Source: Neoechinorhynchus agilis (Eukaryota; Animalia; Acanthocephala). Taken from it: a stretch of 64,000 nucleotides of DNA. The DNA lies in the NCBI GenBank assembly GCA_051530055.1, contig CM121343.1, positions 2,140,389 to 2,204,388 of the forward strand, written 5' to 3'. The translations under genes were made by a program, and so were the position numbers. Positions 484 to 64,000 of the stretch are shown piece by piece; the stretch's first letter is position 1; each line of letters begins with the position of its first letter. The notes below the pieces were generated by a model. It was not told where the DNA came from. It ran no database searches and was given only the letters and a program-made list of their open reading frames with translations.

Positions 484-1004
484 ACCGACGAGGTTCGAAA
501 CGTCTTTAATCGAAATAATCATTTTCCGCGGGTGTAGACTTCTAAACAATAATTCCCCGGCACCTCACATATAAACATTACAAAATTTATTTCCTCTTTC
601 CGTTAATCGATGGTTTGGAAAATCTTGAACTCCAACAAGCACTCCTGCCAAACATTGACCTTGCAAATGAAATGATGAAATCGATGTACAAAATAAAGGT
701 AAGTACAAAAAGCACAACCGCCAACAAACGATACCAATCAATACCATACTTTCGGCAATTGGGGCTGGTTAATTCACGCTTCTTTTCAGCAATATTCAAT
801 GTTGTATCGTTGCCATTTTACTTTTTAATTGTTGATACATAAAGGAAAGCTGAAATGTCGTCTCTTAGCAACGAGGATTTCATTGCCAAATTCAAAAGTA
901 GACAACTTTCAAATGGACAAAAATTAAAAAAAAAGAATCTAGAAATATTGTCGATCGACGTTCTTTGATTATAAATGAAGGACCAATCAATCATTTGTAT
1001 TTTA
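484..1004 (+). mobile_element. Second copy of the ~480-500-nt HHR-associated (retrozyme-like) unit; ribozyme 5'-truncated
   Basis: Matches the minus strand of 45077-45660. It starts with the 3' half of the same HHR (ccgacgaggttc-GAAA-CGTC-tttaat, 485-510) but lacks CTGATGA, and ends at catttgtatttta, which precedes the HHR core in the 45-kb copy. Confidence 0.8.
587..816 (-). pseudogene. Small single-pass membrane protein ORF, paralog of 45351-45569, with a 1-nt deletion just after the ATG
   Basis: NIAEKKRELTSPNCRKYGIDWYRLLAVVLFVLTFILYIDFIISF. The 5' end reads atggcaacgatacaac versus atggcaacgaatacaac in the 45-kb copy (frameshift or sequencing error). Confidence 0.55.
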
Positions 1005-1399
1005 GCACAGATGACCAATACCGAAATTTTGATAACTTCTATTGGCCAAAAAAGGAGCGATTTCAATTCAAAGAAAAAGTATTCAACGAAAGAGATTGTT
1101 AGAATGTAACTGCAAAATAGTACGCGCTGAGTACATTTTATTTTCCTACAATCTGATGCCTTCGAAACGTTTCACAATCATGAACACCAATTTTAATCAG
1201 AATACACAAAAATTCAGAAGATTTACAAAAGCTTAGAGCGATGTGTATACTTCCATACGATTCCGAAATCGCCAAATCAAAGTAAAACAGAAACATACGA
1301 TGCTTTGGAGCATTAAAGCAAAAAATTTCAATAGATGCTTGTAATTTGTAAAATTGCAGATTATTTAGCACTCTGTGATAAAAAAATCGTACAGCAAAA

Positions 1400-6106: not shown

Positions 6107-6323
6107 TATTCAGTTATGGGTATGATATAAGTAGGGAAGATTGATTTGAATCCTCTTGCGGCGATTCACACCCCGAGAATCAGCTTTATTTTGTAATATT
6201 TCGTGGGCCAAACCTTTTCAAACATTGTCACCTGAAAACCCGAAACATAGATTCGATGATGGGTTGACTGGTTTACATCTCAAAGTCATATCAAGAAGAT
6301 CCTTCGGGATGGTCTGTATATTT

Positions 6324-11499: not shown

Positions 11500-14400
11500 T
11501 TCCTTCAATTTTTACGCCAATCTTTCAAAATGTACGGCGGTTTTATTGCGAATTTCCTCAGGAAAGATCTAGTCGAATAAAATAATTCCGAACCTTGCAG
11601 AAGGCATGAGATTGTGTCCAAATATCGGATTTAATAAATTCCTTCGATTTTTACGCCTTAAAAAGCGTATAAAGTTCAATCTTCCGAAATATTCGGCGGA
11701 TTTATTGCGAATTTCCTCAGGAAAGATCTAGTCGATTAGATCAATTCCGAACCTTGCTTAAGACGTGGGATTGAATCCAAATATCGGATTTAATAAATTC
11801 CTTCGATTTGTACGCCTTAAAAAGCGTATAAAGTTCAATCTGCCGAAATATTCGGTGGTTTTATTGCGAATTTCCTCAGGAAAGATCTAGTCGATAATAT
11901 CAATTCCGAACCTTGCTTAAGACGAGGGATTGAATCCAAATATCGGATTTAATGATTTCCTTCGGTTTTTACGCCTTAAAAAGCGTATAAAGTTCAATCT
12001 GCCGAAATATTCGGCGGTTTTATTGCGAATTTCCTCAGGAAAGATCTAGTCGATTAGATCAATTCCGAACCTTGCAGAAGGCATGAGATTGTGTCCAAAT
12101 ATCGGATTTAATAAATTCCTTCAATTTTTACGCCTTAAAAAAAGCGTAAAGTTCAATCTTCCGAAATATTCGGCGGTTTTATTGCGAATTTCCTCAGGAA
12201 AGATCTAGTCGATTAGATCAATTCCGAACCTTGTGGAAGGCATGAGATTGTGCCCAAATATCGGATTTAATAAATTCCTTCGATTTTTACGCCTTAAAAA
12301 GTGTATAAAGTTCAATCTTCCGAAATATTCGGCGGATTTATTGCGAATTTCCCCTGTGAAAGATCTAGTCGATTAGATCAATTCCGAACCTTGTGGAAGG
12401 CATGAGATTGTGCCCAAATATCGGATTTAATAAATTTCTTCAATTTTTACGCCTTAAAAAGCGTATAAAGTTCAATCTTCCGAAATATTCGGCGGTTTTA
12501 TTGCGAATTTCTCCTCAGGAAAGATCTAGTCGATTAGATCAATTCCGAACCTTGTGGAAGGCATGAGATTGTGCCCAAATATCGGATTTAATAAATTCCT
12601 TCAATTTTTACGCCTTAAAAAGCGTATAAAGTTCAATCTTCCGAAATATTCGGCGGATTTATTGCGAATTTCCTCAGGAAAGATCTAGTCGATAATATCA
12701 ATTCCGAACCTTGCTTAAGACGAGGGATTGAATCCAAATATCGGATTTAATGATTTCCTTCGGTTTTTACGCCTTAAAAAGCGTATAAAGTTCAATCTGC
12801 CGAAATATTCGGCGGATTTATTGGGTGAATTTCAGGAAAGATCTAGTCGAATAAAATAATTCCGAACCTTGTGAAGGCATGAGATTGTGCCCAAATATCG
12901 GATTTAATAAATTCTTCAATTTTTACGCCTTAAAAAAAGCGTAAAAAGTTCAATCTTCCGAAATATTCGGCGGTTTTATTGCGAATTTCCTCAGGAAAGA
13001 TCTAGTCGATTAGATCAATTCCGAACCTTGTGGAAGGCATGAGATTGTGCCCAAATATCGGATTTAATGATTTCCTTCGGTTTTTACGCCTTAAAAAAAG
13101 CGTAAAAAGTTCAATCTTCCGAAATATTCGGCGGTTTTATTGCGAATTTCCTCAGGAAAGATCTAGTCGATTAGATCAATTCCGAACCTTGTGGAAGGCA
13201 TGAGATTGTGCCCAAATATCGGATTTAATAAATTCCTTCGATTTTTACGCCTTAAAAAGCGTATAAAGTTCAATCTTCCGAAATATTCGGCGGATTTATT
13301 GCGAATTTCCTCAGGAAAGATCTAGTCGATTAGATCAATTCCGAACCTTGTGGAAGGCATGAGATTGTGCCCAAATATCGGATTTAATAAATTCCTTCAA
13401 TTTTTACGCCTTAAAAAAAGCGTAAAAAGTTCAATCTTCCGAAATATTCGGCGGTTTTATTGCGAATTTCCTCAGGAAAGATCTAGTCGATTAGATCAAT
13501 TCCGAACCTTGTGGAAGGCATGAGATTGTGCCCAAATATCGGATTTAATAAATTCCTTCAATTTTTACGCCTTAAAAAGCGTATAAAGTTCAATCTTCCG
13601 AAATATTCGGCGGATTTATTGCGAATTTCCTCAGGAAAGATCTAGTCGATTAGATCAATTCCGAACCTTGTGGAAGGCACGAGATTGTGCCCAAATATCG
13701 GATTTAATAAATTCCTTCAATTTTTACGCCTTAAAAAGCGTATAAAGTTCAATCTTCCGAAATATTCGGCGGATTTATTGCGAATTTCCTCAGGAAAGAT
13801 CTAGTCGATTAGATCAATTTCGAACCTTGCTTAAGACGTGGGATTGCATCCAAATATCGGATTTAATGATTTCCTTCGGTTTTTACGCCTTAAAAAGCGT
13901 ATAAAGTTCAATCTGCCGAAATATTCGGCGGTTTTATTGCGAATTTCCTCAGGAAAGATCTAGTCGATTAGATCAATTCCGAACTTTGCTTAAGACGTGG
14001 GATTGTGTCCAAATATCGGATTTAATAAATTCCTTCGATTTTACACCACATAAAGCGTATAAAGTTCAATCTTCCGAAATATTCGGCGGATTTATTGCGA
14101 ATTTCCTCAGGAAAGATCTAGTCGATAATTATCAATTCCGAACCTTGCTTAAGACGTGGGATTGTGTCCAAATATCGGATTTAATAAATCTCTTCGATTT
14201 TTACGCCTTAAAAAGCGTATAAAGTTCAATCTTCCGAAATATTCGGCGGATTTATTGCGAATTTCCTCAGAAAGATCTAGTCGATTAGATCAATTTCGAA
14301 CCTTGCTTAAGACGTGGGATTGCATCCAAATATCGGATTTAATGATTTCCTTTCGGTTTTTACGCCTTAAAAAGCGTATAAAGTTCAATCTGCCGAAATA

Positions 14401-15785
14401 TTCGGCGGTTTTATTGCGAATTTCCTCAGGAAAGATCTAGTCGATAATATCAATTCCGAACCTTGCTTAAGACGTGGGATTGTGTCCAAATATCGGATTT
14501 AATAAATTCCTTCGATTTTTACGCCTTAAAAAGCGTATAAAGTTCAATCTTCCGAAATATTCGGCGGATTTATTGCGAATTTCCTCAGGAAAGATCTAGT
14601 CGATTAGATCAATTCCGAACCTTGTGGAAGGCATGAGATTGTGCCCAAATATCGGATTTAATAAATTCCTTCAATTTTTACGCCTTAAAAAGCGTATAAA
14701 GTTCAATCTTCCGAAATATTCGGCGGTTTTATTGCGAATTTTTTCAGGAAAGATCTAGTCGATTAGATCAATTCCGAACCTTGCAGAAGGCATGAGATTG
14801 TGTCCAAATATCGGATTTAATAAATTCCTTCGATTTTTACGCCTTTAAAAGGCGTAAAGTTCAATCTTCCGAAATATCTATGGATTTATTGCGAATTTCC
14901 TCAGGAAAGATCTAGTCGATTAGATCAATTTCGAACCTTGCTTAAGACGTGGGATTGCATCCAAATATCGGATTTAATGATTTCCTTCGGTTTTTACGCC
15001 TTAAAAAAGCGTATAAAGTTCAATCTTCCGAAATATTCGGCGGTTTTATTGCGAATTTCCTCAGGAAAGATCTAGTCGATTAGATCAATTTCGAACCTTG
15101 CTTAAGACGTGGGATTGCATCCAAATATCGGATTTAATGATTTCCTTCGGTTTTTACGCCTTAAAAAGCGTATAAAGTTCAATCTGCCGAATATTCGGCG
15201 GTTTTATTGCGAATTTCCTCAGGAAAGATCTAGTCGATTAGATCAATTTCGAACCTTGCTTAAGACGTGGGATTGCATCCAAATATCGGATTTAATAAAT
15301 TCCTTCAATTTTTACGCCTTAAAAAGCGTATAAAGTTCAATCTTCCGAAATATTCGGCGGATTTTTTGGGAATTTCCTCAGGAAAGATCTAGTCGATAAT
15401 ATCAATTCCGAACCTTGCTTAAGACGTGGGATTGTGTCCAAATATCGGATTTAATAAATTCCTTCGATTTTTACGCCTTAAAAAGCGTATAAAGTTCAAT
15501 CTTCCGAAATATTCGGCGGATTTATTGCGAATTTCCTCAGGAAAGATCTAGTCGATAATATCAATTCCGAACCTTGCTTAAGACGTGGGATTGTGTCCAA
15601 ATATCGGATTTAATAAATTCCTTCAATTTTTACGCCTTAAAAAGCGTATAAAGTTCAATCTTCCGAAATATTCGGCGGATTTTTTGGGAATTTCCTCAGG
15701 AAAGATCTAGTTGATTAGATCAATTCCGAACCTTGCTTAAGACGTGGGATTGAATCCAAATATCGGATTTAATGATTTCCTTCGA
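11500..15785. repeat. Satellite array 2, ~160-bp unit, ~27 copies, two interspersed variants
   Basis: aggaaagatctagtcga recurs every ~160 bp. Variant segments are ccttgcttaagacgtgggattg and ccttgtggaaggcatgagattg. Confidence 0.97.
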
Positions 15786-16049
15786 TTATCACATAAAGTC
15801 GGTTATAGAATATCAAAATCTGATTGGAACTATAACCATTGCGAATAAAGAGCTGTTTGAAATGTGTAGCGTCCACAAAATTAGAAGACGTTCGGATTTT
15901 TTTTGGGGGGGGGCTAAAATCGCGTGGCTTCAGGTCAACTATTAATGTTTCAACTCAATTTGGTATTTATAACTAGTGTCTTATTTGTGATATTTCAATG
16001 GACTAAAATAGAAGAGTCAAAAAGTTTTACTAATCAATGTGCTTGAATC

Positions 16050-17067: not shown

Positions 17068-17689
17068 TCGATAATCTTAAATGCCGTTATAAACTTTTTA
17101 AGATTAATTGCTCTTAACACTTTTAAAACTCGTAAAAAAGTCAACTTTACTATCAGATTTGCAGTATTAAAACCCATTCGTATTTTTTGAATTCAACGAA
17201 AAGATCAATAGCTAATAAAAGAGAATTTCCCATTCTCTCCACCATCGCTATCAAAAAATTAAAGCAAATCATCTTGGTATTTCACTAAAGCATCCGGCAA
17301 ACTCAATGTAGTATCAAAATTGAACAATGTAATTTCATCTACATAAACCACTGTTATGAGTCATTTTGGTCGCTATTGATGGCCAAACGAAAACTTGTAG
17401 CGTAAAAATTCTAAAATAAAAACAATGTTCCTTTCATAAAAAAAAAGAGGAAAAAGCCAAGGGATAATCTAAAAAGCCCCAATTTTCATTCGATAACCAT
17501 TGAATATGTGGTCTTTTTTAATCCAATGGCCGATTTACTAACGTTTTAAGAATACTAACCGCACCGAAATGTCAACAAAAACAATTACACTTCGAAAACA
17601 AAGAGTTTTCACATCAAATGGTAGACTATCTTATGTTTAAGGCATTTTAGCTGCACTGTGCTTTCCAGAAAAACCTCATCCCGGCGATA

Positions 17690-18900
17690 ATAAACACTTT
17701 CCCAATGCTCGATTCAATTATGTTTAAAGAGCTTTAACGGTCCCGATAAACTTCGATTCGTCGAAAAAAAAGCATTTCAAGTCCAATGGTCGATACGTCG
17801 ATATTTAAAGTATTTTAACGGCACTGTGAGGTCTAGAAAAACTTCGACCAGCGGAAAATAAAGACTTTTCCAATGCTCGATTTAATTATGTTTAAAGAGC
17901 TTTAACGGCAACGCGATGCCGAGAAAAAAACCTTTCGAAAACAAAGACATTTCCAATGCTCGATTCAATTATGTTTAAAGAGCTTTAACGGTCGCGATAA
18001 ACTTCGATTCGTCGAAAAAAAAGCATTTCAAGTCCAATGGTCGATACGTCGATATTTAAAGTATTTTAACGGCACTGTGAGGTCTAGAAAAACTTCGACC
18101 AGCGGAAAATAAAGACTTTTCCAATGCTCGATTTAATTATGTTTAAAGAGCTTTAACGGCAACGCGATGCCGAGAAAAAAACCTTTCGAAAACAAAGACA
18201 TTTAAAATGCTCGATTCAATTATGTTTAAAGAGCTTTAACGGTCGCGATAAACTTCGATTCGTCGAAAAAAAGCATTTCAAGTCCAATGGTCGATACGTC
18301 GATATTTAAAGTATTTTAACGGCACTGTGAGGTCTAGAAAAACTTCGACCAGCGGAAAATAAAGACTTTTCCAATGCTCGATTTAATTATGTTTAAAGAG
18401 CTTTAACGGTCGCGATAAACTTCGATTCGTCGAAAAAAAGGCATTTCAAGTCCAATGGTCGATACGTCGATATTTAAAGTATTTTAACGGCACTGTGAGG
18501 TCTAGAAAAACTTCGACCAGCGGAAAATAAAGACTTTTCCAATGCTCGATTTAATTATGTTTAAAGAGCTTTAACGGCAACGCGATGCCGAGAAAAAAAC
18601 CTTTCGAAAACAAAGACATTTCCAATGCTCGATTCAATTATGTTTAAAGAGCTTTAACGGTCGCGATAAACTTCGATTCGTCGAAAAAAAGCATTTCAAG
18701 TCCAATGGTCGATACGTCGATATTTAAAGTATTTTAACGGCACTGTGAGGTCTAGAAAAACTTCGACCAGCGGAAAATAAAGACATTTAAAATGCTCGAT
18801 TCAATTATGTTTAAAGAGCTTTAACGGCAACGCGATGCCGAGAAAAAAACCGTTCGAAAACAAAGACATTTCCAATGCTCGATTCAATTATGTTTAAATT
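17690..18900. repeat. Satellite array 3: ~80-88-bp monomers in a trimeric higher-order repeat (~245 bp)
   Basis: Three related monomers sharing ccaatg(c/g)tcgat...tttaacgg occur in the order ABC ABC AB AB C AB C; decayed monomers lie upstream (~17440-17690). Confidence 0.92.
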
Positions 18901-19239
18901 CTTTTACATAACCACGAGACTAGAAAAAAAACTAAGATCAGTAAGAAATTTCGGCCTTTATATTGCGAACCTGTTAAGAAACTCTCCCAATTGTGTATAT
19001 TGCACTATTTTCAAAGCAACATGAAATGCCTTTTGCGTTGTGCGTAATGATGAGTGAAACGCGTAAAATTGACTCATATAACAACCTCCTGCATTGACAA
19101 CTTTGTACTCGATTTCGCGAAATAACAGTAATACAAAGCCAGCGACTTGAACAGCTAATAAATCCGTTTAATAAATAATTTTTCCTAAAAATTTAGAAGC
19201 CTTCTACATGGTCAAAGTTATTAAATAGGAGTATATACA

Positions 19240-21545
19240 ATTTTTCATCATCGAGAGAAAATCCTTGGGGGTGATAGATTTGGCGATGTGGTGTTCACAA
19301 TCCTTAGGATAAAATATATTTTATTGATTTTCAATATTTCACGATAAAGCAACGTTTGATCATCAAGAGAAAATCCTTCGGGAGGATAGATTTGGCGATG
19401 TGGTGTTCTTAATCCCCAGTATAAAATATATTTTATCGATTTTGAATATTTCATGACTAAGCCTCGCTTTATCATCAAGAGAAAATCCTTCGGGATGATA
19501 TAATTGACGATGTGGTGGTTTTCAAAATTAAAGGATAAAATATATTTTATCGATTTTGAATATTTCATGACTAAGCCTCGCTTTATCATCAAGAGAAAAT
19601 CCTTGGGAATGATATAATTGACGATGTGGTGGTTTTCAAAATTAAAGGATAAAATATATTTTATCGATTTTGAATATTTCATGACTAAGCATCGCTTTAT
19701 CATCAAGAGAAAATCCTTCGGGATGATATAATTGCGATGTGGTGTTCAAAATTGGTAAAATATATTTTATGATTTTAATATTTCATGACTAAGCTCGCTT
19801 TATCATCAAGAGAAATCCTTGGGAATGATATAATTGACGATGTGGTGGTTCAAAATTAAAGGATAAAATATATTTTATTGATTTTGAATATTTCATGACT
19901 AAGCATCGCTTTATCATCAAGAGAAAATCCTTGGGAATGATATAATTGACGATGTGGTGGTTTTCAAAATTAAAGGATAAAATATATTTTATCGATTTTG
20001 AATATTTCATGACTAAGCCTCGCTTTATCATCAAGAGAAAATCCTTCGGGATGATAATTGCGATGTGGTGGTTTCAAAATGGTAAAATATATTTTATCGA
20101 TTTTAATATTTCATGACTAAGCCTCGCTTTATCATCAAGAGAAAATCCTTGGGAATGATATAATTGACGATGTGGTGGTTTTCAAAATTAAAGGATAAAA
20201 TATATTTTATCGATTTTGAATATTTCATGACTAACTGTTTATCATCAGAGAAAATCCTTGGGAATGATATAATTGACGATGTGGTGGTTTTCAAAATTAA
20301 AGGATAAAATATATTTTATTGATTTTTAATATTTCATGACTAAGCCTCGCTTTATCATCAAGAGAAAATCCTTGGGAATGATATAATTGACGATGTGGTG
20401 GTTTTCAAATTAAAGGATAAAATATATTTTATCGATTTTGAATATTTCATGACTAAGCCTCGCTTTATCATCAAGAGAAAATCCTTGGGAATGATATAAT
20501 TGACGATGTGGTGGTTTTCAAAATTAAAGGATAAAATATATTTTATCGATTTTGAATATTTCATGACTAAGCCTCGCTTTATCATCAAGAGAAAATCCTT
20601 GGGAATGATATAATTGACGATGTGGTGGTTTTCAAAATTAAAGGATAAAATATATTTTATTGATTTTTAATATTTCATGACTAAGCATCGCTTTATCATC
20701 AAGAGAAAATCCTTGGGAATGATATAATTGACGATGTGGTGGTTTTCAAAATTAAAGGATAAAATATATTTTATTGATTTTGAATATTTCATGACTAAGC
20801 ATCGCTTTATCATCAAGAGAAAATCCTTGGGAATGATATAATTGACGATGTGGTGGTTTTCAAAATTAAAGGATAAAATATATTTTATCGATTTTGAATA
20901 TTTCATGACTAAGCCTCGCTTTATCATCAAGAGAAAATCCTTCGGGATGATATAATTGACGATGTGGTGTTCAAAATTTAGGATAAAATATATTTTATTG
21001 ATTTTCAATATTTCACGATAAAGCAACGTTTGATCATCAAGAGAAAATCCTTCGGGAGGATAGATTTGGCGATGTGGTGTTCTTAATCCCCAGTATAAAA
21101 TATATTTTATTGATTTTGAATATTTCATGACTAAGCATCGCTTTATCATCAAGAGAAAATCCTTGGGAATGATATAATTGACGATGTGGTGGTTTTCAAA
21201 ATTAAAGGATAAAATATATTTTATTGATTTTAATATTTCATGACTAAGCATCGCTTTATCATCAAGTTTGGGTTTGGTGTGGTGTTTATAAAATATATTT
21301 TATCGATTTTGAATATTTCATGACTAAGCCTCGCTTTATCATCAAGAGAAAATCCTTCGGGATGATAGATTTGGCGATGTGGTGGTGTTCAAAATCCCCG
21401 GGTAAAAGATATTTTATCGATTTTCAATATTTCATGGCTAAGCCTCGCTTTATTATCAAGAGAAAATCCTTGGGAATGATATAATTGACGATGAGGTATT
21501 CATAATCCCCAGGATATAAAATATTTTATTGATTTTCAATATTTC
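19240..21545. repeat. Satellite array 4, 114-bp unit, ~20 copies
   Basis: atcatcaagagaaaatcc at 19471 and 19585 (114 bp apart). A variant monomer pair appears at ~19250-19440 and again at ~20960-21120. Confidence 0.97.
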
Positions 21546-22519
21546 ATGGCTAAACATCCCTCGATTCTGAATTTAAACAATCAAAACTCCCCTGATCGTT
21601 TTTTTAGAAGATCAGCACTTTCCCAGGTTGCTCTCTCAAACCGAGTGCATTCGATTGACCCAAAGATTGGGTCATCCGGAAGAATCTATTGTTAATCATG
21701 CTGACCAAGTCCATTGAACATTATTAGTTCATTTTGATTGGAATTTCGAGTATATGAGTTTAGGGTTGTTCTATGTTTCATGAAAGCGCAATAGTTTGAT
21801 TCTTTTTGTAATTTTTTAAATAAATTTAACTGAAAATTTCCAGTTTTAACACGTGACTGCTATAATAGTCAAGAATATAATGCTATTAAAGTTCCCTAGA
21901 GTCTTAAAGTCTCTATTGAACTACACTGCTTTCGGGAAACAAATTTTTAGATATTTCGGCTGTTTTGTGGCGTCATTAATTTCTAATCAATCGAGTCGAA
22001 TTATCGGTACAATGTTTATTTCTTTACTATTGGATAAATCCTTAGATTTATTGCTTTGATCTTAGAGTTCGCTATTTTCAGATAGTTCGCGATTATTGAT
22101 TGTCAATCAATGCTTGTGACGAAGTTTGCCAGTCTTTTGTAGGTGATTAATTAGAAAGTATGCTCAATTGACATTTTTGTCTTGGATTATTATCTTCGGA
22201 AGGGGTAAAGATACTTTCTTTTTCTTACTTTTGCTACTCTCCCGGATTTAAATTGACTGATTTTTCCTCCCCGATATTTCACTTCTGATAATTCTGACAT
22301 TTTTTCAAGGTTGTCGTAGTTATTCGACGTTAAATTTTTAATGGCGATATAAAAAATAAGTTTCGATTGTTTATTGCGTCGTTTTTTAATTTAATTCAAA
22401 GTGAAAACTTTGATTTTCGATGGAATACAAGAATTATAGGTTTTTAACTTTTTTTTAAAGGAAGGTACTTAAAATTCCCTAATATTCGATTTCATTCCGA
22501 ATTTCTAAGCCGGAAAAAT

Positions 22520-33900: not shown

Positions 33901-33940
33901 ACAACCTGAAGAAGTCCGACGAGACGGACGAAATATTGAG
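33901..33940 (+). ncRNA. Minimal type I hammerhead ribozyme motif (weak stem I)
   Basis: CUGAAGA-A-GUCCG-acgaga-CGGAC-GAAA-UA-UU. Confidence 0.6.
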
Positions 33941-41400: not shown

Positions 41401-44400
41401 TTAAATCTTTATCCGTTTTATTTATAGGCCATGAACGTACCTTTGTCCCAACGCATGGCATGTCCATCATCGTCGACCTGGAAACTTGGCCTCAAATGCT
41501 TGAATGCATGTATTTTGGCAGGATTTGACACGGGTAAGCGCGATGTTTTGGCATTTTTACTCAATTTTTGCGGTATTTTCGAACCAAAAAGGAATCACCC
41601 ATAAAAAATACAACATTGCCTCTCTCCTTAACTTTAACTTGAAAATATTTTCATAGCAGCGTTGTAGTTTAATTGAATTCTATTTTTGCATAGATAAAAA
41701 GGTAGATTATTGATTAATCAAATTACTATTTAAACTCAAAAATTGTCATAATGAGTTTAAAGTTCTATTTTCGTTGCTTGTAGCCATAATGTTTCAGGAT
41801 TTTTAGTCGACTTTTGCGGTATTTTCGAACGGAATGTAATCACCCCTAACAAATACAACATTGCTTCTCTCCTTAACTTTAATTTGAAATATATTCAGTC
41901 GCTAGTTTAATTGAATTCTATTTTAGATAAAAAAGTAGATTATTGATGAATCAAATTACTATTAACCCAAAGCTAATGAGTTTAAAGTTTATTTTCGTTG
42001 CTTGAATAATGTTTAGATTTTTAGTCGACTTTTGCGGTATTTTCGAAAGGAATGTAATCACCCCTAACAAATACAACATTGCTTCTCTCCTTAACTTTAA
42101 TTTGAAAATATTTTGATAGCAGCGTTGAAGTTTAATTGAATTCTATTTTTGCTTAGATAAAAAGGTAGATTATTGATGAATCAAATTACTATTTAAACTC
42201 AAAAATTGTCATAATGAGTTTAAAGTTCTATTTTCGTTGCTTGTAGCCATAATGTTTTAGGATTTTTAGTCGACTTTTGCGGTATTTTCGAACGGAATGT
42301 AATCACCCCTAACAAATACAACATTGCTTCTCTCCTTAACTTTAATTTGAAAATATTTTGATAGCAGCGTTGAAGTTTAATTGAATTCTATTTTTGCTTA
42401 GATAAAAAGGTAGATTATTGATGAATCAAATTACTATTTAAACTCAAAAATTGTCATAATGAGTATAAAGTTCTATTTTCGTTGCTTGTAGCCATAATGT
42501 TTTAGGATTTTTAGTCGACTTTTGCGGTATTTTCGAACGGAATGTAATCACCCCTAACAAATACAACATTGCTTCTCTCCTTAACTTTAATTTGAAAATA
42601 TTTTGATAGCAGCGTTGAAGTTTAATTGAATTCTATTTTTGTAGATAAAAAGGTAGATTATTGATGAATCAAATTACTATTTAAACTCAAAAATTGTCAT
42701 AATGAGTATAAAGTTCTATTTTCGTTGCTTGTAGCCATAATGTTTTAGGATTTTTAGTCGACTTTTGCGGTATTTTCGAACGGAATGTAATCACCCCTAA
42801 CAAATACAACATTGCTTCTCTCCTTAACTTTAATTTGAAAATATTTTGATAGCAGCGTTGAAGTTTAATTGAATTCTATTTTTGCTTAGATAAAAAGGTA
42901 GATTATTGATGAATCAAATTACTATTTAAACTCAAAAATTGTCATAATGAGTATAAAGTTCTATTTTCGTTGCTTGTAGCCATAATGTTTTAGGATTTTT
43001 AGTCGACTTTTGCGGTATTTCCGAACGGAATGTAATCACCCCTAACAAATACAACATTGCTTCTCTCCTTAACTTTAATTTGAAAATATTTTGATAGCAG
43101 CGTTGAAGTTTAATTGAATTCTATTTTTGCTTAAAAAAGGTAGATTATTGATGAATCATACTATTTAAACTCAAAAATTGTCATAATGAGTATAAAGTTC
43201 TATTTTCGTTGCTTGTAGCCATAATGTTTTAGGATTTTTAGTCGACTTTTGCGGTATTTTCGAACGGAATGTAATCACCCCTAACAAATACAACATTGCT
43301 TCTCTCCTTAACTTTAATTTGAAAATATTTTGATAGCAGCGTTGAAGTTTAATTGAATTCTATTTTTGCTTAGATAAAAAGGTAGATTATTGATGAATCA
43401 AATTACTATTTAAACTCAAAAATTGTCATAATGAGTATAAAGTTCTATTTTCGTTGCTTGTAGCCATAATGTTTTAGCATGTTTATCTGCTTTTAACCGC
43501 TTTTTACAATTTCGAACGCTCAAAAGTCCAAAGGGAACGGATAAAGATCTTTATTTTCCATTTCCTTGAGGATGCATAAAACATTCCATTTTTGAATCGC
43601 GTTATAATAGTTGGCTGGCCTGGGGTCCTGTACCATTTTCCAATTTTAAAAATTCTGTTTTGCTTGGTCCTTGTGCACCAATTGTCTCAATCGCGAGAGG
43701 TTTTTAAAAAGCAAAGCGACGGGGCATTTGTACTTTTTCCCTTTTTTCGGCAGTGGCCTTTTCTTCACTTCCTCGGTTCCTGAAATTGCGCAATCGTATT
43801 CGGGTAGGTAAACAGGAGACAGCCTCTTTCTCAGGGTACTGTTAATGCGCCGTCTGGTCTTTTCCCTGGAGCGATTTATTCTGGCTATCGTTTAGGGGCA
43901 ATTGAGCCGATTAATTATTTTGCTGTCCATCTTTAACCCCGCATTTGCATGTCGTCTCTTTAGTTGAACTAGACGATAAAGTTCTATGGGAGCATATATG
44001 CGACACGTTCACGAAATTCTTATTTCCCTACCCTCAAATGAGTTCAATGGTCGATCCGGAATACGTTTGTTACGATTGTATTGCAGTTGATGCAATTGAA
44101 CTTATTCTGAGGAAGATTCATGACGGACCGGACCATTATTGTACCTTAGCATCGAATCTTTTGAGTATTATCGTTCGCGGTAGTGACTTCAAGGTGGTTG
44201 CAGACCAAAGTGAAGCTGTTCCAACAACAATAACCGAGACCGAGGTTACTAAGCGACTTCATTTCGCCCATAAATGTTTTAAACTATTGTCTATGTGCGG
44301 TACCGGTGAATCTCTGCGATCAAATGGAACGCCCGGTGCCCGCGATGAAGAGTTGGTTAAACGAGAGCCGACTATGCTCCAACGCTTAGCAGCGCCGATG

Positions 44401-44898
44401 CTGGTTGAGCGATGTAGATCGACGACGATTTCATTTAATAAGGGCGGTGAATATTTAGATATCTAAAATAGAAATCATTGGCGAATAAGACAATTATATT
44501 TCGATTTGAAGCCGAGCAGTCATTATCGAATGCATATCTTTTGGACAGGTATGAACAATATTTTTAACTTATCAATGAAAATGTCTGTCTTAAACTCTAC
44601 AAGAAGTAGATACGAGGAATTCAGTGTTGCTGGAAGCGCCGTGATTGCAATGCTCAACTCTATTCTTCATACGCCTGGTATAAAATAGCATAGCGTCTAT
44701 CTTGCTCTTCCATCTAAATCTTTAGTTGATAAAACGTCATGGAATTCATTGGTTTCAATGTACGATCCGCTACTAAGGCTCACTAAGGAACAGCGAGACG
44801 AACTCGCTGATGTGAGAGCATACGAAATACTTTTGGCATTCGTGCCGTTCCTCAAGCAGCCATACGAGATATGCCCTAAAGATCACATACAACCGTGA
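35420..44898 (+). CDS. MON2: Protein MON2 homolog (Sec7/BIG-related endosome-Golgi factor), multi-exon
   Basis: N-terminus RLLEQILAELRQVSNDTKRKQPHIKE|AAE...PLVMAC...AIHRL. Also VWTGILSSFQFLLE...LCRLCLPSGY, SWPLII, NTTLTAIEMLWQIGDY, DARSSVRKSAIHTLF and WSET. Last exon ends ...DHIQP*. Confidence 0.9.
37055..37320 (-). mobile_element. CRE-like retrotransposon short 3' fragment in a MON2 intron
   Basis: Near-identical to 27770-28000 (cctcccgccgaattccagcttttgtccttcctcg); encodes FVPFGVENYGALG. Confidence 0.88.
41540..43480. repeat. Satellite array 5, ~240-bp unit, ~8 copies, inside a MON2 intron
   Basis: cgacttttgcggtattttcgaacggaatgtaatcacccctaac recurs at ~42270, 42510, 42750, 42990 and 43230. 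Confidence 0.96.
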
Positions 44899-45137
44899 GT
44901 GAGAAGAGTGAGTATACGCACTTGAGTAAGTGTGAGCTTTCCAATCATAAAAAAAGGCGATTGTGAACGAGTATTATGAACAGTGGTGGGTCCGCTCATT
45001 AATGACGATTTTTAAGCAGAGACAGACCCACTCATATCAATATGTCTTGGATTATTATTTTCGGGGGGAAAAGATACCGGGGAATATTGATTAGTGGAAT
45101 TGTTTAGAAGTCTACACCCGCGGTAAATGATTATTTA

Positions 45138-45180
45138 GATTAAAGACGTTTCGAGCGTCGTAGGGTTCATCATCAGTCAT
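45138..45180 (-). ncRNA. Hammerhead ribozyme motif with decayed stem II
   Basis: CUGAUGA-U-gaaccctacgacgctc-GAAA-CG-UC; three substitutions relative to the intact copies, two of them breaking stem II pairs. Confidence 0.5.
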
Positions 45181-45350
45181 AAAATACAAATGATTGAATG
45201 GTGCGTCGATCGACAATATTTCTAGATTCTTTTTATTTTTAAATTTTTGTCCATATGAAAGTTGTCTACTTTTAAATTTGGCAATGAAATCCTCGTTGCT
45301 AAGAGACGACATTACAGCTTTCCTTTATGTATCAACAATTAAAAAGTAAA

Positions 45351-45569
45351 ATGGCAACGAATACAACATTGAATATTGCTGAAAAGAAGCGTGAGTTAAC
45401 CAGCCCCAATTGCCGAAAGTATGGTATTGATTGGTATGGTTTGTTGGCGGTTGTTGGTTTTGTACTTACCTTTATTTTGTACATGGCACTTGTCGTTACA
45501 TATGTAGTGTCAGTATATAGCAAGAGTGCTCCTCGGAGTTCAGGATTTTCCAAATCATCGATTGACTGA
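45351..45569 (+). CDS. Putative 72-aa single-pass membrane protein, antisense to the HHR strand
   Basis: MATNTTLNIAEKKRELTSPNCRKYGIDWYGLLAVVGFVLTFILYMALVVTYVVSVYSKSAPRSSGFSKSSID; ~26-aa hydrophobic run; substitutions versus the 587-816 paralog are mostly conservative. Confidence 0.55.
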   Translation: MATNTTLNIAEKKRELTSPNCRKYGIDWYGLLAVVGFVLTFILYMALVVTYVVSVYSKSAPRSSGFSKSSID

Positions 45570-45621
45570 AAGAGGAAATAAATTTTGTAATGTTTATATG
45601 TGAGGTGCCGGGGTTTTATTT

Positions 45622-45666
45622 ATTAAAGACGTTTCGAACCTCGTCGGGTTCATCATCAGTTTGTTA
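45622..45666 (-). ncRNA. Minimal type I hammerhead ribozyme (left arm of a perfect 45-bp inverted repeat)
   Basis: AAA-CUGAUGA-U-GAACC-cgacga-GGUUC-GAAA-CG-UC-UUU. Confidence 0.82.
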
Positions 45667-45685
45667 AAGTGTTTTTATTGCTAAT

Positions 45686-45730
45686 TAACAAACTGATGAT
45701 GAACCCGACGAGGTTCGAAACGTCTTTAAT
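45686..45730 (+). ncRNA. Minimal type I hammerhead ribozyme (right arm of a perfect 45-bp inverted repeat)
   Basis: Core CTGATGA at 45693-45699, stem II GAACC/GGTTC, GAAA at 45717-45720, GTC triplet with predicted cleavage after 45724. Confidence 0.82.
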
Positions 45731-45747
45731 CGAAATAATCATTTTCC

Positions 45748-46479
45748 GGACAAGGAATGCCAACTGCCCGCAATATTGACAAAATTCGCGAACAAGAAGT
45801 TTTGGAAAGACAACGAATCCTTCCTTACCATCTTCACATGAACTTAGAAATGGCGGAGTGCGTTTATCTCACAGGCGCCATACTGACTGAAATATCTGCT
45901 ATGAATATTGATTCGCCTCGAAAACGACAGCTTAACAAACAATTCTTCCACCAGATTAAACAATATGAACGGCAACCCTTCTTTGGATCACCGGATACTT
46001 GTAAAGAACACGTAATGGCAGCAATATGATGTGTCAAAAATGCCGATTGGAATGGAGCATGCGATTTGCTTATCAACGACAAAATGAATCGAAAAGTGTG
46101 GGGACGATTAGCCACTCCGAATTTCCCCATTGAACAAATCCAAGCAACCGTTACAAACGCAGCCAAAATAGAATGCCTCAAGATTTTTTTAATGTGCTTG
46201 GCAACGTCTTATACAAACTTACGACTTAAGACGCTCTCTGATATGTTTGACCTTCCAGAGTACCTAGAGTATTCCAAAGACCTTCCTGTGAATACTACGG
46301 TCGAATGTGTTAAGCGGATTGTCAGTGATATGATTTCTCGAGGTGAAATAAGAGCAAAATTGAGTGAACAGGACGATCATTTGGTTATGCTTCACTCCCG
46401 GCAAACTCCGGTTGCGTCTTGGTTGGGAGTCTCGGGAAATTGCCTGAACAATGTACTTATTTTTATCGATGTTCACTAA
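45748..46479 (+). pseudogene. EIF3C: 5'-truncated eIF3 subunit C (C-terminal PCI region) with an in-frame stop
   Basis: GQG...EVLERQRILPYHLHMNLEMAECVYLTGAILTEI...QYERQPFFGSPDTCKEHVMAAI*...W...TSYTNLRLKTLSDMFDL...IVSDMI..EIRAKL. TGA at 46027-46029; the N-terminal half is absent. Confidence 0.88.
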
Positions 46480-46779
46480 TAGCCCTGCCAAATTGTACGC
46501 GTTTTAGAAGGATTCAGCGCTCCTTTGAAGATCTTCCAAGGATGTTGCTGGAGTTCCATTATCATCAGCGTACTGAAGTTTCGTTACATTGATGAAAGAT
46601 GTTTACGAAATCGACTTCAGACGTCTGAGATTGAATGGATCTCCATCAAATTTGTACCGGACTTGTACGTGTTTCGTCCTTTGACATAGTAGGACGGTCG
46701 CCATGGAGATCGAGAACAATGCCTGGGCAAGAACGCATCCTTGCTTTACTCCGGTAGTGATTTTGGATGCCGGGAAACA

Positions 46780-57557: not shown

Positions 57558-59336
57558 TCAAACGAATTCTTCTTGTGCTTCTGCCGTACCATCGCCCTCT
57601 GAAATCGCATTCAACTGAATTTGTCGGATATACTCGTCATATTCGGTCGGCTCATTCCACCACTCATAAATCTCAGCTTGAGCGTTGACGAACGTAACTC
57701 CACCTTCCATAGCGTTACTTTTTATTGTCCCGGAACTTTGCTTTGCTGGCGGCGGCAACAAATCTTCTTGAATTCCAGCATCTAACGCCCTTTTATGCGA
57801 ATGCGAGACTTCCTCCTTCAAAGGTGGTCCATTCGAATTTCTATTACGCAATTGTGCGCTAGCAGCAGTTTGATCGTAGAAACTAATTGAGCCTTGTTCG
57901 TTAATATTTTCGAGCATTCGCCCAGCATGAACAATTCGCGAGTCGTTTTTTTTGTCACATGATTTTCTCCCGAACTCCTTGGTAGAATACCCCGTCCCTG
58001 GTTCTTTTAGTTCGCTAATGGCACCCTCGGATGGTTCCATTTTCTGTTTCTTCGCATCGGCAATTATTTGATCAATGAAAGCTCCAACTTCATCTGGGTT
58101 AGAACTTGTGTTTGGCGCTGTATTCCTCTTCCGAATAGTGCATTGGTTTCTAGAAATGGATTCGTACGGACGGTCCCAGAAACCTGATGTCCCGTTGGAA
58201 CACTTTCTCGAGTGTCATTTGATTTGAGTTTGTTTGTCCAGTTGTTTCGTTATTAATATTTACAAATCCTTCTTGGTTCGAACCGTTAACATGACCTTGA
58301 AAAGTATTTCCAACTGGATTCATTACCGTAGCCGTGGATTGGTTTGCAGAATTTGGATCCGCCGGCATAGTCATAGGACCTTGCAATCCCATTGGACCAC
58401 TTGCTCCGATACCCATTTGTGGTAGGCCGAAATTTGTAATATAATTTCCATGGTATGTGTGTACCGTTGGAGTATTCAGATTTGCTGGAGGAAGGTAAGT
58501 ATTATTTATTCCAATTCCATTATTCATTTGTTGATTTGTGCCATCATAGCCCCATTGTGTGTTCATGGCATTTTGAGTTATAATATTGTTTTGGTGCTGG
58601 AATTCAAATTGTTGTCCAAGAGCATTTGGTTGAAAATTTCCGTTGTATATTTGTGCTGGCTGATACCACGGATTATTCATGGCAAATGTATTAGGTGGGA
58701 TATTATTATAAGTTTGAGATCCGAATTGTGGCAGCTGATTGTATCCATTGGGTGGATACAAATCTGAGCGCACTGGGGTACTATGGCTTTCGGTCGTAAA
58801 CGGCTAAGTCTCCGGTTCTTGTCCGTGTAGGTCCCCGTCCTCTTCCCGGTCTACGTCCGTCACGCGCTGCATTCATATTTTCCTGTGTAAACCCGAGGTC
58901 GCTTTGCTGGACGTTCCTTTATATTGTTTGGATCGTACGTCCAATGATGCTCTGCAACCCGTGGCGCTAACCACCCTTACAAATTGATCATGGTGTGATA
59001 AATTGTGTCTTATCGAGTTCTAAAATTGAGATATTATTGAAGTTTTAAAAAATGAATCATGGCGATGCTCACCTTCATTTGATCGATATCTCTTTTGACG
59101 GTCATTGATGCGAAATATTCAACATTACTAATCATCCAATTGTAGATTTCTTGTAGTGTTAGTCGCTGCTCTGCTGAGGTTGTAATCGCCAGCTGAATAA
59201 GTTCAGCATAAGTGGCGATTCCCCAAGGATTTTGTCGTCTCCCAGGTATCCTTACAATCTCAGTGGCCGCCTGTTCATGTGGATTTATTGTCGCTGAGGC
59301 ATTCTCGTAATTGTTTAATCGATTTAGATTGTTCAT
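57558..59336 (-). pseudogene. FoxO-like forkhead gene, left copy, with apparent frameshifts
   Basis: RRQNPWGIATYAELIQLAI...RLTLQEIYNWM...K|NSIRHNLS. A 2-nt deletion near 58940 (gcatcattgg vs gcatcctattgg) leads to an early stop, and there are further 1-nt deletions near 58210 and 58155. Confidence 0.7.
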
Positions 59337-60429
59337 TGAAGTTGTTTGATCCTTGAAATTTGACGTTGTTACAAAGTTTAAGAATCAACGTGAATAGACG
59401 ATCTTCAAGTGTTAAGCGCAGCTTATATACTCCTGGATGTTTCTTGAAAACATTTACACCTAATCCAAGTGAAAAATATTGTATTTTTGAGTTCAAGTAC
59501 ACTTATAATTCGTAGTTAGAATTTTGAAATAGTTCGCCTCAGAATATGCAGATACATTTAAAATTACCAGAAATTGATTTCTAATACTCGCCAAAGATCG
59601 ACGTTTTTTTAGCAATTAATAAATACACACGTTGATCCTCATCGGATTTAAACACTCTTACACGTCTGAATGTTCTGAAGGACGGGTTGGTCCTCATCGT
59701 TTGTGAGTTTATTTGGTATAAAATTCAATAAATGAGCTATTTGATAGATAAAAAGCTGTTTACATTAAAAATGTGTCCTTTTTTAATCACAGATAAAAAC
59801 ATTTTTGCCTCTGTTAAATTGATGATCTCGTCAATAAACACTTTGCCTTGAAAGTTGCGACGAAATCAGAAGGAAACTATAATGCTACTTTATATGGGTT
59901 TTGGTTACAATCAGTAGTCTTCAAGAAAACCAAACAATCTGCTAATCATTTTTTTTAAATTTTGTTGGCGACCAGATTAACCGCTTTAAATCAAAAATTA
60001 AGCAATTTGAAAATCACCAACATGGAACACGGTTTGTTGCTGGAATTTCACTTGAATTAACATAATTAAATTGCACTGTCATGAAATACTTAGAAACGCC
60101 TCTGGTTTGAACGAAGCTTTTAAACACCCAGGAATGTATAAAACTATATTTCAATTTCATATATTTCACTTTATTAATTTATAAAGTTTACTTCCAGTTA
60201 GACATTTAAAAAATAAAGTATTATCGCACTATATTTTCCATCCGCATGATCGATCAGGTTTTTTATTGGCACTTGGACGGGCAGTTGTAGATATGAAGAA
60301 AAATCAATATTTTTGAGCAGTCGACGTCTTACGGCTTCTTCAGAAATCTACAAAGGCAAGTGGAGTTGTGAAGTGTGTTGAAGTAGCGACATCGAAACGG
60401 AAAGTTCGTCCCGCTTGTTGAGCAGTCCG

Positions 60430-61630
60430 TCCAAAACGAGCCATCAATGCAACCGCCAGAAAATTCTGATAATTCGAAGGCTCAGTTCTCAAGGAAAATC
60501 TCGACTGAAAATAAGCAGCGAACTGCGTTCATATCGCCTACAATCGACGCTACTGGCGCAGACACCTTGAACGCGCCGCTTATCGATCACGGTAACCTGA
60601 GAAGATCAACGCTGCCGGACTCCCCCACGTCTCTACTGGTGTGTGTTCGGTTTGCGGTAAGTCTTATAAATTAACCAATTTGGGGTTTTGTTTGCCCATG
60701 GTCCCCGGGATCTCCGCTGAAGCGAGTCTGGTTCTCAATCACAATCAACCGATCTGTTTATACCTCGGACCTCTCAGATCACCACTGACTATATTTCGAT
60801 ACCTGATATCGTGCGCTTTCTGCCCAGGAAAGTCCTGAAACGGATCCCAAAGGGCGCACGATATCAGGTCGCCAACGCATTTACGGGAATGTTCAACGAT
60901 CGCCTCCCGGCTCTTCGGATTCCCGCGCTTAGTTCTTTGCACCAGTGATGACATCAACAATCAAGGAAAGGGTGGCCCCCTCCGAACAGATATTTAACGA
61001 TTTCGAAATCAAATTTCGCGAGGTTCGTAAGGGACGTACGAAGGAAGGGTTTCGTTGCGGTTTTTCAAAGCGATCACTGACTGAATGTGTCTCTTCGAAG
61101 CCTGCGGACGGAGATGTTCGAGGGCTGTTAGGTTATTGTCATCCTCCGACAGTTTTGCACGAGGAGACAACGCGACACTACAAATACTCCGGTCATAACA
61201 TCCATGCAGTAGTGGCAGTTTTGAAATTCCATCTCCTCCCGTACAAGACAGGACACCCTCTGAAACTTCAGAATTAAAAAAGGTAATCTCTTCTTTTGCA
61301 AATGGATCGGGTCATGGACTTGACGGGCTAAGACCTCAGCACCTAAAAGACATGATGTCCTTTTCAACTGGTGAAGCAGCTCTCTAGAAACTGCGCTTTC
61401 TCGGTTAGTCGACCGCCTGATAATGACAGCGCTGGTTTGCTCATCGTCATTCATGGAGAAACGATTGGCGATAGAGCCAGTGAACACAATTTTCACTGAG
61501 TGAAAATTCACTAGCCACGTTCGAAAAATGCTACGACGACCGAGAAACGATGTCCCGATTGTCCGCGCAACGAGCGTTTTCGCGGACAATGCGCGGGCGA
61601 GTTCTGGACATCAGCTAGGCAAAGCCACAG
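60430..61630 (+). mobile_element. CRE-like retrotransposon 5' portion forming the spacer of the inverted duplication
   Basis: CSVCGKSY zinc-knuckle-like start, LKRIPKGARYQVANA, DGDVRG/AVRLLSS and GLDGLRPQHLKDM motifs with frameshifts. Confidence 0.8.
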
Positions 61631-62707
61631 TACTGCTCAACAAGCGGGACGAACTTTCCGTTTCGATGTCGCTACTTCAACACACTTCACAACTCCACTT
61701 GCCTTTGTAGATTTCTGAAGAAGCCGTAAGACGTCGACTGCTCAAAAATATTGATTTTTCTTCATATCTACAACTGCCCGTCCAAGTGCCAATAAAAAAC
61801 CTGATCGATCATGCGGATGGAAAATATAGTGCGATAATACTTTATTTTTTAAATGTCTACCTGGAAGTAAACTTTATAAATTAATAAAGTGAAATATGTG
61901 AAATTGAAATATAGTTTTATACATTCCTGGGTGTTTAAAAGCTTCGTTCAAACCAGAGGCGTTTCTAAGTATTTCATGACAATGCAATTTAATGAAATTC
62001 CAGCAACAAACCGTGTTCCATGTTGGTGATTTTCAAATTGCTTAATTTTTGATTTAAAGCGGTTAAGCTGGTCGCCAACAAAAATTAAAAAAAAATGATT
62101 AGCAGATTGTTTGGTTTTCTTGAAGACTACTGATTGTAGCCAAAACCCATATAAAGTAGCATTATAGTTTCCTTCTGATTTCGTCGCAACTTTCAAGGCA
62201 AAGTGTTTATTGACGAGATCATCAATTTAACAGAGGCAAAAATGTTTTTATCTGTGATTAAAAAAGGACACATTTTTAAAGTAAACAGCTTTTTATCTAT
62301 CAAATAGCTCATTTATTGAATTTTATACCAAATAAACTCACAAACGATGAGGACCAACCCGTCCTTCAGAACATTCAGACGTGTAAGAGTGTTTAAATCC
62401 GATGAGGATCAACGTGTGTATTTATTAATTGCTAAAAAAACGTCGATCTTTGGTGAGTACTAGAAATCAATTTCTGGTAATTTTAAATGTATCTGCATAT
62501 TCTGAGGCGAACTGTTTCAAAATTCTAACTACGAATTATAAGTGTACTTGAACTCAAAAATACAATATTTTTCACTTGGATTAGGTGTCAATGTTTTCAA
62601 GAAACATCCAGGAGTATATAAGCTGCGCTTAACACTTGAAGATCGTCTATTCACGTTGATTCTTAAACTTTGTAACAACGTCAAATTTCAAGGATCAAAC
62701 AACTTCA

Positions 62708-64000
62708 ATGAACAATCTAAATCGATTAAACAATTACGAGAATGCCTCAGCGACAATAAATCCACATGAACAGGCGGCCACTGAGACTGTAAGGAAACCT
62801 GGGAGACGACAAAATCCTTGGGGATTCGCCACTTATGCTGAACTTATTCAGCTGGCGATTACAACCTCAGCAGAGCAGCGACTAACACTACAAGAAATCT
62901 ACAATTGGATGATTAGTAATGTTGAATATTTCGCATCAATGACCGTCAAAAGAGATATCGATCAAATGAAGGTGAGCATCGCCATGATTCATTTTTAAAA
63001 CTTCAATAATATCTCAATTTTAGAACTCGATAAGACACAATTTATCACACCATGATCAATTTGTAAGGGTGGTTAGCGCCACAGGTTGCAGAGCATCCTA
63101 TTGGACGTACGATCCAAACAATATAAAGGAACGTCCAGCAAAGCGACCTCGGGTTACACAGGAAAATATGAATGCAGCGCGTGACGGACGTAGACCGGGA
63201 AGAGGACGGGGACCTACACGGACAAGAACCGGAGACTTTCCCAACCCGTTTACGACCGAAAGCCATGGTACCCCGGAGCAATTAGCTCCAAATTTGTATC
63301 AACCCAATGGAAACAATCAGCTGCCACAATTCGGATCTCAAACTTATAATAATATCCCACCTAATACATTTGCCATGAACTATAATCCGTGGTATCAGCC
63401 AGCACAAATATACAACGGAAATTTTCAACAAAATGCTCTTGGACAACAATTTGAATTCCAGCACCAAAACAATATTATAACTCAAAATACCATGAACACA
63501 CAATGGGGCTACGATGGCACAAATCAACAAATGAATAATGGAATTGGAATAAATAATACTTACCTTCCTCCAGCAAATCTGAATACTCCAACGGTACACA
63601 CATACCATGGAAATTATATTACAAATTTCGGCCTACCACAAATGGGTATCGGAGCAAGTGGTCCAATGGGATTGCAAGGTCCAATGACTATGCCGGCGGA
63701 TCCAAATTCTGCAAACCAATCCACGGCTACGTTAATGAATCCAGTTGGAAATACTTTTCAAGGTCATGTTAACAGTTCGAACCAAGAAGGATTTGTAAAT
63801 ATTAATAACGAAACAACTGGACAAACAAACTCAAATCAAATGACACTCGGAGAAAGTGTTCCAACGGGACATCAGGTTTCTGGGACCGTCCGTACGAATC
63901 CATTTTCTAGAAACCAATGCACTATTCGGAAGAGGAATACAGCGCCAAACACAAGTTCTAACCCAGATGAAGTTGGAGCTTTCATTGATCAAATAATTGC
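62708..64000 (+). CDS. FoxO-like forkhead transcription factor, right copy, open to the window edge
   Basis: Exon 1 62708-62971, a 52-nt GT..AG intron, then exon 2 from 63024 (NSIRHNLSHHDQFVRVVSATGCRASYWTYDP) with no stop up to 64000; N/Q/G-rich C-terminal region. Confidence 0.85.

Follow-up and report, generated by a model that had tools for sequence, protein, structure and literature searches.

The question raised by this locus is whether two hammerhead ribozyme motifs (HHRs) on one strand, with an open reading frame (ORF) between them on the other, delimit a mobile element that carries its own gene. The locus lies in a stretch of DNA of 64,000 nt (the window), whose coordinates are used throughout. 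A preliminary description had read the 483-nt unit at 45145–45627 as a retrozyme-like element with protein-coding cargo. Such an element would be the first ribozyme-bounded unit mobilised by Penelope-like elements (PLEs) with a protein cargo of its own, and would supply a natural case, in animals, of a ribozyme-processed RNA that is possibly coding. What the evidence favours is a commonplace result of PLE activity, in a genome rich in PLEs. The unit is probably a copy of a short, RT-less PLE family, inserted in the standard PLE configuration and mobilised in trans, with the ORF as a by-product and not a gene. The parts of the earlier interpretation that stand are the small element of PLE origin, its PLE hammerheads and the existence of its RNA; the terms retrozyme-like and protein-coding cargo do not.

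We call the 483-nt unit copy A and a second copy in the window copy B. Both hammerheads of copy A are of a minimal form (CUGAUGA…GAAACGUC) on the minus strand, and their predicted GUC cleavage sites, at 45628 and 45145, are 483 nt apart, as had been described. Read along the minus strand, the locus consists of an inverted fragment, a spacer, the upstream hammerhead (HHR1), a cut-down tail, the body, the downstream hammerhead (HHR2), a 46-nt tail and the start of a diverged unit. The parts are as follows.

45685–45748, plus strand: inverted 5′-truncated element fragment, made up of 8 nt, an intact minimal hammerhead (45693–45724) and 24 nt from the beginning of the tail.
45628–45659, minus strand: upstream minimal hammerhead (HHR1), intact and perfect; predicted cleavage after C45628.
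45614–45627, minus strand: shortened tail after HHR1, lacking in alignment 36 nt that are found in copy B and most genomic copies.
45177–45613, minus strand: body of the unit, 437 nt, in about six copies per genome as judged from whole-genome shotgun (WGS) read depth.
45351–45569, plus strand: 72-codon ORF, antisense to the hammerheads, read here as fortuitous.
45485–45534, no strand assigned: variable patch, with 60% identity between copies A and B.
45112–45312, minus strand: sense-strand ORF of 66 codons reading through HHR2, with a start common to copy B and no homologue.
45145–45176, minus strand: downstream minimal hammerhead (HHR2) with three substitutions; its GUC ends at 45145.
45099–45144, minus strand: 46-nt tail after HHR2, a high-copy segment with the family boundary at 45099.
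44993–45098, minus strand: stump of a further, diverged unit after the tail, about fivefold repeated; its left limit is approximate (about 44990).

The plus-strand motif at 45693–45724 and HHR1 form a palindrome with perfect 46-nt arms and a 17-nt spacer. At the other end of the locus, thousands of loose WGS read ends fall at 45099, and the loose-end consensus of the reads before this position resembles the window sequence. The stump beyond it lies within the 3′UTR of the neighbouring gene and has a WGS depth of 72 in the bin 44993–45069. In one DNA contig, 45613 is joined to 45099. Pfam detected no RT or GIY-YIG domain in the ORFs of the unit or in 10 of the 18 window ORFs of at least 150 aa, and no RT or EN ORF was found flanking either copy in the window. 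A tRNA-derived SINE was rejected because ARAGORN reported no tRNA genes.

The inverted fragment directly adjoins a fragment of eIF3c. This is an intronless, 5′-truncated copy at 45747–46413 (Pfam eIF-3c_N and PCI), whose start coincides exactly with the end of the inverted hammerhead fragment. It matches positions of about 1830–2496 in a 2.6-kb mRNA contig with one mismatch, and WGS depth suggests about two genomic copies. The window has T at 46027, against C in the RNA and in most DNA reads, so the eIF3c copy in the window is probably the unexpressed one.

HHR1 comprises a CUGAUGA core, an unpaired U, a 5-bp helix II (GAACC/GGUUC) closed by a 6-nt loop, and GAAAC followed directly by GUC. The motif has no helix III stem-loop, a palindromic ACGU junction and a short helix I. 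The conserved catalytic core (C3-U4-G5-A6-N7-G8-A9 ... G12-A13-A14) and the GUH triplet are present in HHR1, in HHR2 and in the plus-strand copy, and the window contains the 3′ half of the motif four times, where 0.04 occurrences would be expected by chance. As described, the minimal hammerhead (min-HHR) of PLEs carries an unpaired nucleotide 5′ of stem II, its helix I is short, and helix III and loop 3 are both missing. It is presumed to act as a dimer, its activity in vitro is low even in dimeric form, and it is found in direct repeats and also in opposite-strand pairs nearby, 100–700 bp apart (PMC4209133). Judged by their sequence, the hammerheads at this locus are the helix-III-less min-HHR of PLEs and not canonical type I. 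Even with the limit relaxed to E ≤ 10 over 1 kb, the Rfam hammerhead models gave no match to the motifs, only the palindrome being picked up, mimicking miRNA hairpins, and nothing in the whole window reached the Rfam gathering score. Such a blank is expected for a variant without helix III.

HHR2 is decayed, in agreement with the preliminary description: two of its three substitutions break helix II, at two of the five pairs. At two of the HHR2 sites, 45155 and 45157, the intact letters are present in about 80% of WGS reads and represent the family consensus. The decay is thus private to a minority of copies, copy A included. Other min-HHR-like motifs are found in the window at 33906, 34101, 34146 and 47018. 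They belong to different sequence families (CUGAAGA…GAAA and CUGACGA…GAAA), and those at 33.9–34.3 kb sit in nested palindromes.

Copy numbers were estimated from WGS run X8 at a likeness of at least 85%, with 44300–44915 as the single-copy baseline (depth about 12.6). Depth over the body was 53–91 (mean about 74), corresponding to about six copies, against approximately 3800–4400 over the 3′ half of the hammerhead and the tail, corresponding to about 300–350 copies. The helix II loop had a depth of about 800, and the sequence directly upstream of CUGAUGA about 370. This contrast indicates that the ribozyme and tail piece is a widespread PLE terminus and that the body is a small family; hammerhead and tail together are common to about 300 genomic copies. 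The commonest joint of the high-copy part is that of a head-to-tail repeat of about 70 nt, containing half a hammerhead and the tail. It lacks the CUGAUGA half and would therefore be ribozyme-dead. Among the read joints listed there was no body-specific tandem joint of unit length (about 483–521 nt). The commonest genomic form of the PLE terminus (45099–45146 and 45614–45762) is this tandem repeat of about 70 nt, in hundreds of copies.

Insertions of PLEs form partial tandems that give rise to pLTRs, and they carry an inverted 5′-truncated copy at the 5′ end, a tail of 30–40 bp and HHRs inside the pLTRs (PMC8557442). The same architecture is present at copy A, with direct hammerhead repeats at 45659–45614 and 45176–45099, the inverted fragment at 45685–45748 and a tail ending at 45099. 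Acanthocephalans are rich in PLEs as far as the one genome analysed shows: that of P. laevis is 8.9% PLE, including HHR-bearing Neptune and Penelope/Poseidon families.

We therefore favour, as probable, the reading of the unit as a copy of a short PLE family without RT. The insertion would comprise two direct repeats with a minimal, dimer-type hammerhead, the inverted 5′-truncated fragment upstream, and the 46-nt tail and stump downstream. Its hammerhead and tail would be common to several hundred PLE-derived pieces, and its 437-nt body would belong to a family of only about six copies. Movement or duplication would most likely have taken place through the RT-endonuclease of autonomous PLEs with the same terminal sequence. 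The unit would be either a non-autonomous PLE derivative or an internally deleted copy from which a few further copies were later made; the body could be a non-autonomous sequence in its own right, or else the 5′ region of an autonomous element that a deletion has joined to the 3′ end of the same element. Mobilisation in trans we infer, as we do any choice between the terms non-autonomous and internally deleted.

The second copy, first placed at 484–1004, proved to be real and slightly longer, with a body about 91% identical to that of copy A.

479–1014, plus strand: copy B, in the opposite orientation to copy A, with 91.5% identity to it over the body.
587–799, minus strand: remnant of the 72-codon ORF in copy B, with the ATG out of frame, the stop lost and 20 of 71 residues different (stop codon not counted).

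Copy B starts inside the hammerhead, exactly at the high-copy junction of the family (ACAGT/ACCC at 45703, about 3700 reads), and retains the full 46-nt tail and the body. The CUGAUGA core is absent at both ends of copy B, and similarity to the hammerhead after the body is only 50%. The two copies have both body ends in common, and their flanks are unrelated.

These common ends bear on a rival explanation, in which the body would represent the terminal repeat of an autonomous PLE together with its 5′ region. The unit would then be a pLTR tandem, solo or partial, or the product of an internal deletion, and the 66-codon sense ORF would be the N-terminal stump of a PLE protein. The sense ORF has a common ATG in both copies, and partial tandems of PLEs yield pLTRs of any length, as this explanation would have it. 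However, copies A and B agree at both body ends and differ in their flanks, the body is present in only about six copies, and neither copy has an RT or EN ORF beside it in the window. The 66-aa product has no homologue, and the frame that ends at the UGA of the hammerhead is open for 19 codons only; an endonuclease stump before HHR2 was rejected on account of this short open stretch. We consider this explanation unlikely.

The 50-nt patch at 45485–45534 is 60% identical between A and B, against 95–97% for the neighbouring stretches. The patch aligns without indels (MAFFT) and falls in the C-terminal half of the 72-codon ORF. At least three haplotypes, mosaic for the patch, occur among the reads and contigs, and the patch could have come from recombination between subfamilies. 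Adenine-specific mutagenesis of the DGR kind was ruled out, as substitutions of all types are present.

The preliminary description had proposed a check for RNA, and the presence of the family in RNA was borne out, in contigs that are undirected. Four runs labelled as RNA contain 70–84% of the sampled words of the unit. RNA contigs cover it at word depths of about 11–92, compared with 174–191 for the neighbouring spliced gene. Copy A is matched exactly by the contigs over 45107–45419, and two further variants are represented, one of them of the copy B type. The introns of the neighbouring gene have zero depth in the RNA assemblies, which makes DNA carry-over unlikely. The 3′ part of this gene is the following:

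43945–45131, plus strand: last exons and 3′UTR of a MON2-like gene, with Pfam Mon2_C upstream, GT..AG joints and a stop at 44896–44898.

The spliced RNA contig of the MON2-like gene extends to 45131, within the tail of the element. Copy A thus falls inside, or immediately past, a 3′UTR on the same strand as that gene, and plus-strand RNA from it requires no separate promoter. The family RNA comprises at least three sequence variants in assemblies from which MON2 intron sequence is missing, so read-through at copy A cannot account for all of the family RNA. The RNA of copy A would most simply be 3′UTR or read-through of the MON2-like gene, and that of the other copies may be ordinary transposon transcription.

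In the 3′UTR of the MON2-like gene, RNA run X1 and most DNA reads differ from the window at 44957 (G>A) and 44961 (T>C), and run X3 matches it; the differences are probably allelic. A satellite array with a unit of about 245 nt (41446–43485) is located inside the region of this gene. It is one of five such arrays in the window, the others being at 1389–6146 (about 195 nt), 11501–15938 (about 159 nt), 17686–18904 (about 250 nt) and 19238–21584 (about 114 nt). The window ends in a large fold-back (58060–64000) of inverted repeats with 99–100% identity, arms of up to 920 nt and a centre of about 1.2 kb.

The ORF at 45351–45569 on the plus strand is intact in copy A, as had been reported, with 72 codons, or 80 if read from an upstream ATG, and it encodes a strongly hydrophobic stretch. 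Its length is within chance. When the 483-nt unit was shuffled by dinucleotides, ORFs of at least 72 codons beginning with ATG turned up in 7.1% of shuffles done globally and in 8.9% of those keeping local composition, and the window contains 63 ORFs of at least this length, or about 0.5 per 483 nt. The antisense (minus) frame across the same stretch is also open, for 73 codons in copy A and 75 in copy B.

Copy B has lost 1 nt at 45360, after codon 3, which shifts the ATG out of frame; about 11% of reads show this deletion too. A T>G change at 45567 alters the stop codon, both in copy B and in about 42% of reads. From codon 7 on, the frame in copy B is open; the chance of the frame staying free of stops is about 50%. 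Codon changes were counted between copies A and B, the two full copies read, and about four other copies were represented by the variants listed. Between A and B 23 codons are changed, 21 non-synonymously and 2 synonymously, where random placement would give 5.4 synonymous changes. The changes are distributed 15:8:6 over codon positions 1, 2 and 3, so that third positions are the least variable. This is the reverse of the pattern produced by purifying selection, and thus indicates that there is none. Among the variants listed, those of a third haplotype seen in the reads are mostly non-synonymous too, for example I26F, G30 and L31F. The ORF frame has the best BLOSUM sum of the six frames, and its replacements are no more conservative than permutations (P = 0.23).

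No homologue of the 72-aa product was found by word-indexed search, by exhaustive phmmer against 1.84 billion representatives or in Pfam. Neither phmmer nor Pfam gave a true homologue: the single phmmer match, to a bacterial LysM/NlpC repeat protein, was spurious, and Pfam returned only sub-threshold transmembrane noise. The best of the nearest neighbours in the Atlas scored 0.80, which is the level of shuffled proteins. Searches with the 66-aa and 73-aa products of the minus-strand ORFs likewise found no homologues.

In favour of the ORF, the hydrophobic stretch exceeds what local composition would lead one to expect: it has a 19-residue Kyte–Doolittle mean of 2.8, a value reached by only 0.8% of block shuffles; the 72-codon ORF is the only one of at least 60 aa in the window to exceed 2.5, and the stretch is retained in copy B. 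It coincides with a concentration of GTT, TTG and TGT trinucleotides around 45439–45483 that is at the 99.97th percentile of the window. A patch rich in these trinucleotides would be free of stops on both strands and hydrophobic when translated. The ORF may accordingly be put down to composition, a T/G-rich and GTT-rich stretch leaving both strands without stops. A decayed (GTT)n microsatellite is at most suggested as the origin of the hydrophobic frame, since TRF called no tandem repeat at the GTT-rich patch.

An AATAAA lies 8 nt past the stop of the ORF in both copies. RNA contigs end at 45596/45597, 14 nt after the AATAAA, and a poly(A) site on the ORF strand at this position was considered and rejected. 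The contig end is accounted for by unitig merging at k = 31, since it falls exactly 30 nt past 45567, the last site that distinguishes the paralogues.

A real gene on the element, fast-evolving, lineage-specific and encoding a small single-pass membrane protein, would fit several of these observations: an ORF that is unbroken in copy A and, in copy B, free of stops from codon 7, an unusually strong hydrophobic core that copy B has kept, many conservative replacements with the best BLOSUM sum of the six frames, an AATAAA at the same distance from the stop in both copies, and family sequences in the RNA-seq assemblies, albeit in undirected contigs. It is contradicted by the blank homologue searches (word-indexed, phmmer and Atlas), by the 21 non-synonymous against 2 synonymous changes with third positions least variable, by the similar bias of the further read variants listed, by the frameshift at codon 4 of copy B and by the loss of the stop in about 42% of reads. 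The length of the ORF is within chance, and copy A is in the 3′UTR zone of another gene with RNA contigs that give no direction. Such a gene is very improbable. The fuller version, a PLE-derived, hammerhead-bounded mini-element that spreads this gene, with the variable patch as the trace of diversifying selection on the C-terminal part of the protein, we hold to be highly unlikely as well. The preliminary description had itself named a lack of ORF conservation among copies as one half of what would tell against it, and no such conservation was found: start and stop are not conserved, the codon changes are overwhelmingly non-synonymous, and the antisense frame is open too. We infer that the 72-codon ORF is fortuitous and not a gene.

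There remains the label retrozyme. Metazoan retrozymes have canonical type I HHRs, units of about 170–400 nt, and circular RNAs with a high degree of self-pairing (PMC7229834), and retrozymes have been derived from pLTRs (Li et al. 2026 preprint, 10.64898/2026.07.22.740005). If the unit were a genuine non-coding retrozyme, its two hammerheads would cut out an RNA of 483–521 nt, which would be ligated to a circle and retrotransposed by PLE machinery. Two same-strand HHRs do bracket the unit, family RNA exists, and the same preprint finds pLTRs and non-LTR retrozymes to be phylogenetically related. Yet the min-HHR type is weakly active in vitro even as a dimer (PMC4209133), HHR2 is broken, and copy B has no HHR core. 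No head-to-tail array of the unit was found, no multimers of it were seen among the read joints listed, and copy B is solitary. The unit exceeds the reported 170–400 nt, its RNA folds no better than shuffles (z = +0.87), and the RNA contigs yielded no unit-specific back-joint. A retrozyme in this strict sense is highly unlikely.

The repeat that interrupts the eIF3c copy (46413–46542) is present in very high copy number, about 600 copies by WGS depth. A head-to-tail read joint, leading back 130 nt with 45 other letters, gives a tandem unit of about 175 nt. The loose-end consensus of this repeat contains CTGATGA, and the RNA contigs include the repeat as well. As a retrozyme candidate it may be preferable to the 483-nt unit.

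The value of the locus is modest, as a cleanly annotated partial tandem of a PLE, complete with inverted fragment and tail, for which copy numbers are available from reads. Three known systems can be set beside it. The anatomy of the PLE min-HHR (Cervera & de la Peña 2014, PMC4209133) is matched by HHR1, although helix II is 7–8 bp in the Schistosoma families and 5 bp here, and the two repeats here enclose no RT-EN ORF.

The metazoan non-LTR retrozymes (Cervera & de la Peña 2020, PMC7229834) resemble the unit in being short, AT-rich, PLE-related and transcribed, without a protein of known function, and in being bracketed by same-strand hammerheads of type I topology. They differ in having the canonical type I HHR, with a helix III stem-loop and contacts between loops 1 and 2, where the unit has a min-HHR and no helix III loop. 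Retrozymes also occur abundantly as dimers to large multimers of head-to-tail monomers of about 150–450 bp, whereas here there is one unit of 483–521 nt with a diverged stump, in about six copies. Their circular RNAs are highly self-paired, and the RNA of the unit has no excess structure over shuffles. It is for these differences in hammerhead type, arrangement, copy number and folding that the term retrozyme-like was given up (PMC4209133, PMC7229834).

The third system is that of the non-autonomous or internally deleted PLEs, such as the non-autonomous Chlamys elements, MRC1 among them (Craig et al. 2021, PMC8557442). In these, as here, pLTRs and head-to-tail insertion are retained, RT is absent, there is an inverted 5′-truncated copy and a tail, and the 3′ end is common to a larger family. 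The examples there belong to the Chlamys clade, a clade without canonical HHRs. Here the copy number is very low and the partner is a putative one. In the sense used by the 2026 preprint the unit is a relative of the retrozymes, yet it fails the defining retrozyme features examined; it works like a non-autonomous PLE.
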